A stretch of 64,000 bases of DNA from the sequence record MT612988.1, one strand, 5' to 3'. The notes beneath the pieces were generated by a model. It had not been told where the DNA came from. It did no database searches and saw only the letters and a program-made list of their open reading frames with translations. This document shows, piece by piece, positions 25,360 to 54,279 of this stretch; position 1 is the stretch's first letter, and each line of letters starts with the position of its first letter. Position numbers and translations under genes: made by a program.

Positions 25360-25379
25360 AATTCAACCTCCGTGTAGTG

Positions 25380-25408
25380 ATTATACACGGCATCACGATA
25401 CGATAAAC
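25380..25408 (-). promoter_or_regulatory. GTTTAT-17-TATAAT promoter for primase
   Basis: -35 at 25403-25408, -10 at 25380-25385, GGAGG SD. Confidence 0.7.
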
Positions 25409-25410
25409 AT

Positions 25411-25432
25411 AAAAAAGCCCCGTTTCCGAGGC
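25411..25432 (-). terminator. Terminator of the late 3-gene operon
   Basis: gcctcg-gaaa-cggggc followed by T6. Confidence 0.8.
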
Positions 25433-25438
25433 GTTTTA

Positions 25439-25918
25439 TTATTCGAAATGTCTGAACTTCTTCAGCTTTTTCTTTTTCTTTTTCTTACCGATAGTTTCAG
25501 GACCTGCATTAGTTACAGCACCAGTCGTTTCACCAGAAGCAATCGACTCTGGTGAGCTACTACCGTCACCCGCATCACCTGCAACAACAGCTTCTTCGAC
25601 TCGAATACACTCTTTCGCGAAATCTTCAGATAACCCGTATTCTTTTGCAAGCTCAATCAGCAACAAATAAGACGCGCCATAATCAAGTGCTGTTTTACCA
25701 CCTGGTAATGCACCAACCATGCGCTTGATATTTCTCACAGTAACATGAAACATCGTCCAGTTACTTTTCTCTTGTGCAGTTACAGGGTCACGCAACTTCT
25801 TACCATCTGCGTCGATGATACCCATTCGATATGCTTCCCAACGTTCAAAACGAAGATGAAGCAAACGAGACAGACGAAGAGCATAAAAACCATCTGCACC
25901 ACGTTTAGCTACACTCAT
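25439..25918 (-). CDS. gp61.1-family protein with C-terminal gp23 N-arm-like segment and poly-Lys tail
   Basis: FYALRL...WEAYRMGIIDADG...TMFH...RNIKR recalled from the T4-like 61.1 family; adjacent to gp61. Confidence 0.7.
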   Translation of the reverse strand: MSVAKRGADGFYALRLSRLLHLRFERWEAYRMGIIDADGKKLRDPVTAQEKSNWTMFHVTVRNIKRMVGALPGGKTALDYGASYLLLIELAKEYGLSEDFAKECIRVEEAVVAGDAGDGSSSPESIASGETTGAVTNAGPETIGKKKKKKKLKKFRHFE

Positions 25919-26742
25919 TATGCCCCCAAGATTTGCTCAAGTTGACGATCAAAGATCTTCTCTGCTTCATCAAGTGGTAATGGTACGCTGCGCATGAATT
26001 CGTGCAGATTATCTTCGCGAATCAGATTTTCAATAGTACTAGATGGTACTTTGTTCTTGACTTCAACGATCTCGAATCGTGTTCCACCTACACGTAGGAA
26101 GTGACGACCTAGACGGCGATACTCAGCTACTTTGTTCGCTTCTACAAATGCAAACACGCGAGTGATACCTTTTTGAATCATAGTCTCTACTTCAGCAAAC
26201 ATCACGCCTTTCGGTGCAACATCGACATCAGAGAACGATTCAAATAATTCAACGCGCTCTTGAAGTGATAAAACCTTGTTCTGAGCCTCAGGTACAAACA
26301 CTTTACCAACAGCACCAACGTGTTCACACGCTTCAGATAATGTTTTAGTCAATTCTTTATGACCAACTGAAGGAATGCTTGAATCCACGTCCATGATACA
26401 CGCAGCGTCAATCGCACACTCATTCACAACGGTTTCATGTTCGAAGAAATCTTTTTCCGAAACGACAAATAGACCCTCATCAAGTTTAGCTGCAATTGCT
26501 TCAGCTTCTTGTTGTTGTTTCTTCATCGTTGCTTCTTCTTTTTCAGCAGCAGATTCTTTGTCAAACATGGTGATTTTGCCGCGAATTGCGTCTCGAACAC
26601 GAATGTCCATCATCGGTGTGATGTTCGCCCCGAGTTCTTTTTTCTTTTGCGTATATAGTTTCTCGATTTCAACTACACCGTCTTTGGTAGTACATTGGTG
26701 AACCGACGCAATAAGTTCTTCCAATTTATCTTTGATAGCCAT
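25918..26742 (-). CDS. UvsW.1-like domain fused to a degenerate cytidylyltransferase-like domain
   Basis: IASVHQCTTKDGVVEIEKLY...DIRVRDAIRGK versus T4 UvsW.1; C-terminal PSVGHKEL and SSTIENL...EFMRSVP. Confidence 0.55.
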   Translation of the reverse strand: MAIKDKLEELIASVHQCTTKDGVVEIEKLYTQKKKELGANITPMMDIRVRDAIRGKITMFDKESAAEKEEATMKKQQQEAEAIAAKLDEGLFVVSEKDFFEHETVVNECAIDAACIMDVDSSIPSVGHKELTKTLSEACEHVGAVGKVFVPEAQNKVLSLQERVELFESFSDVDVAPKGVMFAEVETMIQKGITRVFAFVEANKVAEYRRLGRHFLRVGGTRFEIVEVKNKVPSSTIENLIREDNLHEFMRSVPLPLDEAEKIFDRQLEQILGA

Positions 26743-26745
26743 TAG

Positions 26746-27591
26746 CTACTCCTCGTAAACAATCGTATTTTTAGTAATTCTTGATTCGAATACAACTTCA
26801 ACACGTACACCATAAGGCAATGCCTTAGAACGGCGACATGCATCATTTCTAATCAACATATACGGGTGATATACAGTATCTTTAATATCTTTCGCGTTCA
26901 ACAAAACATCACCGTTAATATGCAAGGTACCGCGTTTGAATACAAAATCATCTAGTGTAAAGCTATTGACTACAACAAGACCGTTATTGAGAATGTCTGA
27001 ACCAAATACAACATGATTTATTTCGTCGTCTCGTAGTCTGCGTGCGATTGGCTGGCTAAGTCTCTTCACTTTACCATCGTCAGAATAGTCCGATAATGTA
27101 ACCATCTTCTTGACTATCATTTGTGATAAAAGCTTACGAGCTTCAGTGCCGTGAATAACGTCAGTACTAGCCCAACGCTCGGCATTTGATTTTTTAATCG
27201 AAATCGGAAAATCGCCGCTTACGGTCTTCAATACCATATCGGCTTTTTTGTTGTTTTTTGTGTCGTGACCAGTCATTTCAATCGACTGAACACCTTTTAT
27301 TACTCGTCGACCAATTTTAATCCGAGTACAGCCAGAATCAATGTGTTGCTTTACAATATTATAGAAATTGCGTTCATTCTCGATGCCCGGATTAGATGTT
27401 GGTTTGACGTATACTCTGCATTTTTCCATCTGTATACAACCAATTGAACTGCCTGGGTCGCACTTCTTGTACGTCCCGTCAAGCTCTTTCGCAAGTTTAA
27501 CAATTAGACCAAGTCGATTTTCATCTGTGTAGATAACGATCTTTCGGCTATTGATAATTCTCGCGTCATATCTTAACAAAACATCTATCAT
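26746..27591 (-). CDS. PD-(D/E)xK nuclease-like late protein
   Basis: ENERNF...KADMVL...PISIKK pattern; late promoter and RBS-occluding hairpin upstream. Confidence 0.5.
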   Translation of the reverse strand: MIDVLLRYDARIINSRKIVIYTDENRLGLIVKLAKELDGTYKKCDPGSSIGCIQMEKCRVYVKPTSNPGIENERNFYNIVKQHIDSGCTRIKIGRRVIKGVQSIEMTGHDTKNNKKADMVLKTVSGDFPISIKKSNAERWASTDVIHGTEARKLLSQMIVKKMVTLSDYSDDGKVKRLSQPIARRLRDDEINHVVFGSDILNNGLVVVNSFTLDDFVFKRGTLHINGDVLLNAKDIKDTVYHPYMLIRNDACRRSKALPYGVRVEVVFESRITKNTIVYEE

Positions 27592-27593
27592 AG

Positions 27594-27642
27594 TGCATGA
27601 ACACCATCTTTAATACCATACCAGTATTTAGATGTTCATGCA
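27594..27642 (-). promoter_or_regulatory. Late promoter TCTAAATA (27625-27632) inside an RBS-sequestering hairpin
   Basis: Perfect 10-bp arms tgcatgaaca (27594-27603) and tgttcatgca (27633-27642), plus inner pairing. Confidence 0.8.
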
Positions 27643-27655
27643 GATAGACTACCAC

Positions 27656-47138: not shown

Positions 47139-48671
47139 CTATGCGGCAAGATCTACTTTCTTGACTGCGTATTTGAACTCTTCTTGGTTGTAAAGCTCAA
47201 TACGTTGCATACCATGCTTCATAGTATAATTTACGTGAGTGTACGGCTTCTTAGCGTTCTTGCGTTTCGGCTTGATTGCTAAGTTGTCGATAATATCAAA
47301 CAGCTTCGCAGTTACCTTCGAACCGTGCTTACGTAGAATACGACCAATCGACTGTAAGTTGATGATCTTGCTCTTCGTTGGGTGCGCAAAGATTACATTG
47401 TGCAGTTTCTTGATACTGATACCAGTAGAAAACACACCATACGATGCTACGATAATAGCCCCGTCAATATCTTCTGCAATCTTCTTCACATGCGTACGGT
47501 CGTCTGTTTTAGTCTCACCAGATACGTAGAACACTTTCTCTGGGTCATATACGCTCTTCAATGCTTCGTAAAGCAATTTACCGTGTTTGATGTTCTTGAA
47601 CAGCAATAGCGTGTTTTCGCCTTTCTTCGCGCTCAAGTGATGCGCAAGCTTAATCAAGTAACGATTTCGCTGCTTGTTCTCAAGAATGAATTTCATTTCT
47701 TCTTGATATGAACTGCCCTTCATTTCATCACGTAACGGCTGTGGGTATTCAAGCATTAAACAGTTTATCTTCAGATCTGTTACTTGCCCTTCTTCCATTA
47801 GCTGTGCAGTCGAAACAGGTCGGAAAATATCACCGAATGAACCAACGTACTGTAGAATATTCGCTTTACCGTCTCGAAGTGAGCCAGTAAGACCGATTTT
47901 GTATTCACAGTTTGTCATTTTCTTGATGATGCCGTCTAATGACTTACCTGTTGCTAAGTGACACTCATCGACTAAAAGCATACCGAATTGGTCAAACCAT
48001 TCTTTCGGTTGTTTTACAGCAGATTGCCATGTAGATACAACGATTCGGCAGTCACCGATTGCGTCTCGATCAACCCCACCACGAATCTGATAAATGTCGT
48101 TGTGTTCGAATAAACGATAATCTAAGAAGTCATCGCGCATTTGCTGGACAAGTGCAGTTGTAGGTACAATCACTAATACTTTCTGAAGTTCGTGCTCTTC
48201 TTGTGCTAAGAACCATTTAGTAATCAGCGACTGAATTAATGATTTACCCGCAGATGTTGGTAGATTCAATAGACTGTGTTGGTTGTTAATTCCGTGAAAC
48301 ACAGAGTCCATCTGATACCAATACGGTGAAATCTTATTCGACCCTGAGTAGATGTCAATAGACTCAACCCATGCTTCGAAATCTTCACGAGAAATTTTCT
48401 CAATCGGATCTAGCATTGGATCGGTTTCAATCGTATACATCATATTTGATGCAAACGCTTTAGCTTGTCCGACTAGACCGTATGGTAATAGACCTTGATA
48501 CGTCATTAGTCGAATTTTGCCATCCCAAATGCCCATTTTAAATTTCGGGTTAAATTTGTACCCATCTGTTAGAAATGAGAAATAGTCAATCATTTCGTGA
48601 GTGATGCTTGGCTCGGCTACGACTCTCGCATAACTCTCATCGTGGTACTCAATTTTAATGTCACATGTCAT
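47139..48671 (-). CDS. uvsW: SF2 DNA helicase UvsW (start ATG 48671)
   Basis: LPTSAGKS, VDECH, LTGS, QSIGRILR. Confidence 0.96.
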   Translation of the reverse strand: MTCDIKIEYHDESYARVVAEPSITHEMIDYFSFLTDGYKFNPKFKMGIWDGKIRLMTYQGLLPYGLVGQAKAFASNMMYTIETDPMLDPIEKISREDFEAWVESIDIYSGSNKISPYWYQMDSVFHGINNQHSLLNLPTSAGKSLIQSLITKWFLAQEEHELQKVLVIVPTTALVQQMRDDFLDYRLFEHNDIYQIRGGVDRDAIGDCRIVVSTWQSAVKQPKEWFDQFGMLLVDECHLATGKSLDGIIKKMTNCEYKIGLTGSLRDGKANILQYVGSFGDIFRPVSTAQLMEEGQVTDLKINCLMLEYPQPLRDEMKGSSYQEEMKFILENKQRNRYLIKLAHHLSAKKGENTLLLFKNIKHGKLLYEALKSVYDPEKVFYVSGETKTDDRTHVKKIAEDIDGAIIVASYGVFSTGISIKKLHNVIFAHPTKSKIINLQSIGRILRKHGSKVTAKLFDIIDNLAIKPKRKNAKKPYTHVNYTMKHGMQRIELYNQEEFKYAVKKVDLAA

Positions 48672-48696
48672 GATTTTTCTCTCTATGCGAGTTTTG

Positions 48697-48722
48697 TCTA
48701 AATATGTATAACTGTATTTATA
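48697..48722. promoter_or_regulatory. Overlapping divergent late promoters: TCTAAATA (+, 48697-48704) and TATAAATA (-, 48715-48722)
   Basis: Motifs lie in the uvsW / 48736 intergenic region. Confidence 0.7.
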
Positions 48723-48735
48723 GAGGTCTAAATTC

Positions 48736-48945
48736 ATGACAAGAGACGAAATGTTTTACAAGATGAAAGATGGTTGCTTTAAGTTTGAGCATAAAGGCAA
48801 GAAATATCACGCGACTTTATGCAAGCATTATCTACCACATCTTGATTGCAATCGAGAAGAACAACGTAAAAATGAAAACGGTGCAGATAATGAACTTACA
48901 TTTTTCGATTTAAATCGAAATGTGTGGGTAACAATTGAATGCTAA
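48736..48945 (+). CDS. Small WYL_2/SH3-like hypothetical protein
   Basis: FKF..K...HATL...LP...FFDL...W pattern. Confidence 0.45.
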   Translation: MTRDEMFYKMKDGCFKFEHKGKKYHATLCKHYLPHLDCNREEQRKNENGADNELTFFDLNRNVWVTIEC

Positions 48946-53886: not shown

Positions 53887-53915
53887 AAACGCATACAGCT
53901 CGATTTAGAGACAAT

Positions 53916-53942
53916 AAAAAGCCCGCACTGAGCGGGCTTTTT
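53916..53942. terminator. Bidirectional terminator
   Basis: aaaaa-gcccgc-actga-gcgggc-ttttt between convergent genes. Confidence 0.9.
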
Positions 53943-53943
53943 A

Positions 53944-54279
53944 TTATTCAGCAGGTGTAATAACAGTCCAAGCGATTCGGAAGAATCGGCTATTGGTATG
54001 TTCTCTGCAAAGTGTAGTTGTTGAATCAACCGCGCCTGCAAGAATGTCAACGCATTCTTGAGAAAGACCAGTAATTGAACTCAACGGACTAGCAGTTTCA
54101 ATCGCAGCTTTAAGCTCTTCATAAGTTTGCTTGTCTACGATAATGTAAGATTCGCCTGAGTGATTAAGCACAGACGTTGTTACATCATCGTACCCACTTT
54201 TCGCAGCGTCTGCCGCTGCTACAGTCGCATCATCAAGTTCGACTGCAAGGTTCATATCAGTATAGATTGGTGTTGTCAT
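53944..54279 (-). CDS. Hypothetical late protein
   Basis: 111-aa ORF after inh. Confidence 0.7.
   Translation of the reverse strand: MTTPIYTDMNLAVELDDATVAAADAAKSGYDDVTTSVLNHSGESYIIVDKQTYEELKAAIETASPLSSITGLSQECVDILAGAVDSTTTLCREHTNSRFFRIAWTVITPAE

Follow-up and report, generated by a model that had tools for sequence, protein, structure and literature searches.

A UvsW.1 domain fused to a motif-eroded nucleotidyltransferase-fold domain in the replication gene cluster of KVP40-like Vibrio phages

The DNA analysed here, a 64,000-nucleotide stretch of sequence record MT612988.1 (hereafter the window), is 100% identical to Vibrio phage vB_ValM_R10Z across the 3.2 kb tested, where it shares 99.6–99.9% nucleotide identity with VH7D, ValKK3 and phi-ST2 and 86% with KVP40 (Schizotequatrovirus, Straboviridae). 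Its minus strand, which carries all the features described below unless stated otherwise, contains at 25918–26742 a gene encoding a 274-amino-acid protein, the orthologue of KVP40.0018. This protein links a UvsW.1 domain, through an acidic helix some 30 residues long, to a Rossmann domain of the HIGH superfamily, similar to nicotinamide mononucleotide adenylyltransferases (NMNAT) and cytidylyltransferases. The gene was delimited from the list of open reading frames (ORFs) and their translation; the match of its product to phrog_14207 spans residues 1–274 of 274 (E = 3.5e-188), and protein identity is 100% in VH7D, ValKK3 and R10Z and 95% in KVP40. We regard the product not as a helicase or an established head protein but as a probable helper, without catalytic activity, of late phage DNA metabolism.

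The UvsW.1 domain (residues 14–69; 26536–26703) was recognised by PF11637 (UvsW-1) with 114.4 bits, far above the gathering cut-off of 25 bits, over positions 1–56 of the 56-position model (E = 2.5e-33). A phmmer search aligned residues 6–64 to T4 UvsW.1 (PDB 2JPN) with an E-value of 0.0023, or 1.2e-11 with a family profile, and reproduced the strings on which a first-pass annotation, made without database searches, had based this identification; C..T..G and DI.VRDA..G are kept in the window protein. The AlphaFold2 (AF2) model places helices at residues 3–15, 20–40 and 43 onward, with a predicted local distance difference test score (pLDDT) of 80–88, so that the first 70 residues correspond to a full-length member of the family (phrog_1143) with the same three-helix pattern. 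The T4 protein is a stand-alone product of 76 amino acids encoded directly behind uvsW, whereas the window domain is the N-terminus of a larger protein whose gene lies 20 kb from uvsW, between those for helicase 41 and primase 61. Six-frame searches with PF11637 found one UvsW.1 per genome, either behind uvsW, as in T4, or in the fused ORF, as in the near-identical VH7D genome, in KVP40 and in Vibrio phage EniLVp02; no match was found by such searches in cyanophage Syn19 or Methylophilales phage Melnitz. In agreement with the first-pass annotation, the ORF list shows no uvsW.1 behind the window uvsW (47139–48671, the counterpart of VH7D gp220 according to the VH7D annotation), where convergent genes on the plus strand come next. 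The same annotation spoke of a domain relocated from uvsW, a wording that assumes an evolutionary direction that these data do not give. T4 UvsW.1 is said to have a helical, HRDC-like fold, to form a complex with UvsW and to suppress strand annealing by UvsW. It has also been described as a potential DNA-binding partner of UvsW (Iyer et al. 2021, PMC7824862). A 272-amino-acid metagenomic protein, P0030, scores 60 bits for UvsW.1 and has a C-terminal part that could not be aligned to the nucleotidyltransferase (NTase) family, with 33% query coverage; it may represent a second kind of UvsW.1 fusion.

The linker (residues 70–90; 26473–26535) is acidic, with an isoelectric point of 4.5, and ends in KLDEG; in the AF2 model it belongs to a continuous helix running from residue 43 to 87. 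Its length and sequence vary across the fused family, and P0016 and P0027 have no linker (alignment A3). The LDE/G site reported between the two domains is indeed present, at residues 87–90 (26473–26484). As a specific signal it does not stand: the protein contains nine [LI]xE motifs, so that this one is within chance expectation, and M or F takes the first position in relatives; the site is therefore uninformative.

The NTase-fold domain comprises residues 91–274 (25921–26472). The C-terminal 180 residues had no match in Pfam, and TIGR00125 matched them below threshold (E = 0.13); a search of the ESM Atlas gave no usable match. Word-index searches returned fused relatives only, and a profile word search extended the fused family to 22 clusters. 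With the window C-terminal domain as query, phmmer retrieved P0012 (8e-11), P0013 (9e-9), P0016 (5e-5) and P0017 (3e-4), all of which also carry a UvsW.1 domain. One of these proteins, P0017, bridges to the cyanophages: it matches phrog_14207 over its full length (4e-32) and phrog_3041, annotated as a cytidyltransferase (1.5e-37), and it retrieved 570 phage records including about 430 from cyanophages, with cyanophage genes reaching 9e-23. It scores 20.8 bits with PF01467 (CTP_transf_like), just under the gathering cut-off of 21 bits, which is passed by the stand-alone P0020 (21.6), Syn19_174 (23.7) and the Melnitz protein (27.4). An hhalign comparison of the fused family with Syn19_174 gave a probability of 96.4% (E = 1.4e-9) and set ACIMDVDSSIPSVGHKEL opposite ISITFGRFNPPTVGHERL.

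Structural prediction agrees with this chain of homologues. A first AF2 model, built from eight close homologues, had a pLDDT of 72.7 and already matched phosphopantetheine adenylyltransferase (PPAT) and FAD synthetase; a second model of the domain, built from 24 sequences, reached a pLDDT of 92.5 and a predicted template modelling (TM) score of 0.87. Searched against the PDB with Foldseek, it matched PPATs best (E = 3e-5, TM score about 0.6), and the closest solved folds also include the NMNATs NadR, NadM and an archaeal enzyme. Among viral models (BFVD) the best matches were the cyanophage cytidyltransferases of S-RIM2, S-PM2, P-TIM68 and P-HM2 (TMq 0.66–0.75). The five-stranded Rossmann-like alpha/beta fold common to NMNAT and PPAT is thus predicted for the window domain (AF2, Foldseek, VIA). 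Identity to NadR, NadM, the archaeal NMNATs and PPAT (CoaD) is nevertheless 9–18%, their GRFxPxHxGH and SxTxxR motifs are not conserved, and the sub-threshold TIGR00125 is the sole match of the window domain in Pfam or NCBIfam. The domain is homologous to the product of cyanophage core gene T4-GC190 (Syn19_174, S-PM2 Q5GQJ8; phrog_395 and phrog_3041), with which it shares the Rossmann domain and a locus downstream of gene 41. The cyanophage proteins differ in passing PF01467, in keeping FGRFNPPTxGH, GGDR and MSxSKxR, and in having other extensions instead of UvsW.1 and DUF6267 as a neighbour, whereas the window protein has eroded motifs and UvsW.1 and lacks the DUF6267 neighbour. Both domains proposed by the first-pass annotation were recovered, UvsW.1 by Pfam and the NTase fold by hhalign, AF2 and Foldseek, as was its reading that the C-terminus follows the cyanophage cytidylyltransferases without their FGRFN.

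Alignment A3 and its motif table sort the fused family into three groups according to the state of the catalytic signatures. Group I (the metagenomic proteins P0012, P0017, P0024–26 and P0028, EniLVp02 and the stand-alone P0020) has (F)ARMNPPTxAH after beta1, GxDRxxEF after beta4 and SSTxxR before the last helices. Group II (the window, all KVP40-like phages, P0010, P0011 and P0021–23) has IMDVDSSIP(S/T)xGH, VE(A/S/E)xK, and PSSxVE with a 9-residue loop deletion, and Group III (P0013, P0016, P0027 and P0029) has lost all three motifs. The intact-motif fusions, such as EniLVp02 gp0207, share with the window protein the two-domain architecture, membership of phrog_14207 (E = 4e-32) and the order fusion, 61.1, primase; they differ in their motifs, in the DUF6267 gene that precedes them and in a C-terminal identity to the window of 23–34%. 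In the window, MDVDSSIPSVGH (residues 117–128; 26359–26394) occupies the site of the canonical (F)GR(F/M)NPPTxxH loop, as placed by alignment A3, the hhalign register against Syn19_174 and the secondary structure of the model. Within the beta1 loop (MDVDSS) the Gly, Arg and Asn of the signature are replaced by Val119, Asp120 and Ser122, and S-V-G-H is kept at the N-terminus of helix alpha1. After beta4, where the sequence reads VEANK, EANK (residues 201–204; 26131–26142) takes the place of G-x-D-R, with E201 and K204 at its ends. Further on, PSSTIEN (residues 233–239; 26026–26046) replaces (M/I)SSTxxR: SST is kept, the Arg has become Asn239 and the loop of nine residues preceding it is deleted. 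Three of the four signature elements are thus eroded by comparison with the fused and stand-alone relatives that keep them, in line with the suggestion of the first-pass annotation that the domain may be inactive. Within the KVP40 clade, S/T-x-G-H is kept in 11 of 13 sequences, mostly as T-x-G-H, GH having become GT in P0006 and TT in P0011, and Group II variants of SST include SNI, SRV and TEA.

In a maximum-likelihood tree, Group II forms a clade with 100/100 support whose stem is long (1.5 substitutions per site); Group III (support 90/94) lies on the opposite side, where Group I and the stand-alone enzyme are also placed. A root among the canonical forms would imply two separate losses of the motifs, but such a placement is unproven, and the branch of P0020 is long. 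Comparison of these sequences indicates that the fusion predates the KVP40 lineage. The eroded domain is not decaying but is under strong purifying selection: relative to KVP40, the ratio of non-synonymous to synonymous substitution rates is 0.023 for the NTase domain (12 non-synonymous and 75 synonymous changes), 0.0 for UvsW.1 and 0.18 for the linker. EYRRxGxHFLRxGGxRFEIV is the most conserved block of the whole fused family. The likeliest interpretation of these alignments is that the NTase domain is a pseudoenzyme, strongly conserved after the loss of its catalytic signatures. In the ancestral form, represented by Group I, the domain probably had nucleotidyltransferase activity and acted together with DUF6267. 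The near-identical genome also contains, outside the window, two bona fide PF01467 genes (G001:C1:28956–29129 and 53901–54224) in open frames of 347 and 327 amino acids, which presumably encode the NAD-salvage type enzymes known from KVP40-like phages.

The position of the gene within a replication cluster (uvsX, 40, 41 ... 61.1, 61, dut, dexA) is kept in every relative examined. The gene order of KVP40 and VH7D is uvsX, 40, 41, nrdD, nrdG, a phosphoesterase gene, 0017, the fusion gene, a 61.1-like gene, 61, dut, dexA and, further on, td; in EniLVp02 it is uvsX, 40, 41, two other genes, DUF6267, the fusion gene, 61.1 and primase. Locus L006 reads 43, uvsX, 41, two other genes, DUF6267, the fusion gene, phrog_2086 and primase, and L015, a 160-kb scaffold, has the same order and continues to dUTPase, dexA and td. 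The arrangement shared by the relatives examined is 41 ... DUF6267 or 0017, fusion, 61.1, 61. In Syn19, DUF6267 (Syn19_173) directly precedes the NTase gene (Syn19_174) downstream of gene 41. PHROG 455 is a single model of 764 positions, of which 7–345 match Syn19_173 and 343–724 match Syn19_174, which implies that some phages encode both as one protein.

In the window, the slot of DUF6267 is occupied by a gene of the KVP40.0017 family (26746–27591, 281 amino acids, phrog_12709). DUF6267 comes before every Group I fusion examined, members of the 0017 family (47–49% identical among them) before the Group II fusions in the window, L017 and L019, and another gene that follows neither pattern before the Group III fusion in L018. 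In this small sample, the lineages that lost the catalytic motifs thus also lost DUF6267. The possibility that KVP40.0017 is a diverged DUF6267 was rejected after negative BLAST and hhalign comparisons, and T4 gp61.2, which occupies the equivalent slot beside 61.1, was likewise rejected as a homologue of the fusion or of the 0017 family (hhalign probability below 1% for both). In the DUF6267 proteins (cyanophage T4-GC71; L006:6853–7995, L015:7896–9008, L010:3871–4950 and L009:3791–4762; alignment A5), the invariant strings S-x-KWDG, HEG(F)V and VKLV-R (KWDG, HEGFVI, KLVDR) recall motifs of the covalent nucleotidyltransferases (ligases and capping enzymes); a profile search of the PDB and an hhalign comparison with T4 Rnl2 found nothing to identify DUF6267 as a ligase-like enzyme. 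On the downstream side, the start and stop of the fusion ORF and of a 61.1-family gene overlap (25439–25918, phrog_2086); this family also follows the fusion in L006. Residues 107–148 of the 61.1-like protein resemble residues 60–98 of gp23, including its maturation cleavage region, with 50% identity (E = 3e-8), a resemblance that accounts for the labels 'major capsid protein' and 'capsid vertex protein' in some records.

The 0017 gene, the fusion ORF and the 61.1-like gene form a tightly packed three-gene unit. Behind the 61.1-like gene, a terminator-like hairpin followed by a T-run was read from the sequence (25411–25434), and the primase gene has its own TATAAT box about 20 nucleotides before its start (region 25360–25438), so that primase appears to be transcribed apart from this unit. 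At the other end, a predicted hairpin (27583–27649; RNA fold of −26.2 kcal/mol, z = −3.66) encloses the start of the 0017-like gene and a late-promoter-like box, TCTAAATA (27625–27632). Boxes with one mismatch are common, with 44 on the minus strand of the window, and the argument for a late promoter therefore rests not on the match itself but on conservation: the CTAAATA core is invariant in the window, KVP40, L017 and L019, where its flanks diverge. Two further one-mismatch TATAAATA boxes near the ORF (26766–26773 and 27549–27556) were set aside, as they are no more than this frequency predicts by chance. The uvsW gene has an exact late-promoter TATAAATA at 48715–48722, about 45 nucleotides before its start. 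Its ORF (47139–48737) begins 22 codons before the annotated start at 48671, and the location of the exact box inside this extension supports both the shorter, 510-amino-acid product and a late uvsW promoter. Late expression of the fusion gene and its co-expression with UvsW are plausible on these sequence features.

Taken together, these observations favour, with roughly even confidence, a model in which the fusion assists the T4-type machinery of replication and recombination as an accessory protein of two domains, with a non-catalytic NTase domain, a docking UvsW.1 domain and late action with UvsW. In this model, the NTase domain would no longer transfer nucleotides and would serve as a binding or scaffold module, and the UvsW.1 domain would keep its T4 role by docking onto the UvsW helicase, branched DNA or both. 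From such docking it would follow that the fused protein acts late, in step with a UvsW that is itself expressed late, in recombination-dependent replication or repair. The claim of the first-pass annotation that UvsW.1 is not a helicase appendage is not supported, as the position in the replication cluster and the late uvsW promoter fit a function shared with UvsW. Several results weigh against the model. PF01467 misses the window protein, including in a six-frame search at the locus. A profile restricted to the KVP40 clade matches the cyanophage NTases weakly, though in the same register (E = 0.016 and 0.0016), and the cyanophage link therefore rests on the intermediates and on structure. 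With (S/T)xGH retained, and SST too in this phage, some nucleotide binding or catalysis may persist. Cyanophages carry UvsW and the NTase and have no UvsW.1, which is therefore not obligatory for either partner. Finally, T4-GC190, the cluster that includes Syn19_174, was detected, at 25 peptide counts, in purified virions of S-SM1 (Sullivan et al. 2010, PMC3037559), pointing away from a purely intracellular role.

This last result is also an indirect argument for a late head-associated protein, a reading in which the products of the late unit 0017-0018-61.1 would enter the prohead, and the fused protein would be trimmed by the prohead protease, for example at LDE/G, and delivered with the DNA. 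The adjacent 61.1-like protein, which copies the gp23 cleavage region, and the late appearance of the unit, with its conserved CTAAATA box upstream and the terminator that closes it, are consistent with such a fate. However, of the three virion proteomes that of S-SM1 alone contained T4-GC190, which went undetected in S-PM2 and Syn9 (PMC3037559), and a literature search found no virion data for KVP40-like phages; the proteome papers on RaK2, phAPEC6 and Atu_ph07 do not mention a cytidyltransferase. The LDEG site is no better than the other [LI]xE sites, the N-terminus of the protein is helix 1 of the UvsW.1 fold and has no recognisable capsid-targeting leader, and the gene sits among replication genes in all relatives examined. 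Late timing suits co-function with UvsW equally well, because uvsW has a canonical late promoter of its own. Of the late head-related module put forward by the first-pass annotation, the late character is thus plausible, given the conserved CTAAATA box, and the head-related character is not supported, given the replication cluster and the non-specific LDE site. As T4 UvsW.1 is said to bind UvsW and to modulate its annealing activity, we consider packaging of this protein unlikely. A bolder version, which we regard as slightly less likely still, would have the products of an entire conserved late module, made up of DUF6267 or a 0017-family gene, UvsW.1-NTase and 61.1, loaded into the T4-type head and injected, because the cyanophage NTase homologue occurs in virions and 61.1 mimics a capsid cleavage site. 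If true, UvsW.1 would be the docking handle, for DNA or helicase, of a packaged nucleic-acid-processing system and not simply a helicase subunit, and the KVP40 lineage would have kept a packaged scaffold after its chemistry was lost.

The domain might instead still transfer nucleotides through a divergent active site built from (S/T)xGH and SS(T), and be targeted to UvsW or DNA by UvsW.1. PPAT uses T-x-G-H, and the retention of S/T-x-G-H in most sequences at the N-terminus of helix alpha1 in the KVP40 clade, like the very strong purifying selection, would suit such an enzyme. The Gly and Arg of GRxNP, the GxDR element and the Arg of SSTxxR are gone, however, along with the deleted loop; even GH and SST vary within the clade; the long stem branch of Group II implies a change of constraint; and two bona fide PF01467 enzymes are encoded at other sites in the phage genome. 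Retained activity is therefore improbable in our view. A nucleotide or ligand sensor, or a 'sponge' whose inactive NMNAT-like pocket would capture nucleotide signals, NAD-related or other, and so, for example, blunt a host NAD-based defence or regulate UvsW, would agree with the NMNATs among the closest solved folds, with a fold conserved after loss of catalytic residues and with the investment of KVP40-type phages in NAD metabolism, including their other PF01467 genes, but is very improbable, since the elements lost are the phosphate-binding ones that usually hold the nucleotide and no defence or anti-defence context was matched.

The accessory-protein model also differs from what public records say of the gene. 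The 274-amino-acid protein is labelled there as 'hypothetical protein', 'DNA helicase' or 'ATP-dependent DNA helicase', and it contains no helicase domain. In the T4 reference record, uvsW is still one ORF of 587 codons that includes UvsW.1, although uvsW and uvsW.1 are two ORFs (Nolan et al. 2006, PMC1524935). The helicase labels on the fused protein derive from this merged record, inherited through PHROGs 1143 and 14207, and are annotation artefacts. The present analysis corrects this mis-annotation, which has been propagated through RefSeq and PHROG.

Our results link three uncharacterised families of T4-like phages: UvsW.1, the T4-GC190 'cytidylyltransferase' and DUF6267, which adjoins the NTase and is fused to it in some phages. 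They also reveal a natural experiment, in which one and the same fusion is found both in an intact-motif form and in eroded forms that seem to have arisen in two separate lineages. A comparison of EniLVp02-type and KVP40-type proteins could reveal both the task of the enzyme and the non-catalytic function that may have outlived it, and would bear on the role of UvsW.1 in recombination-dependent replication.

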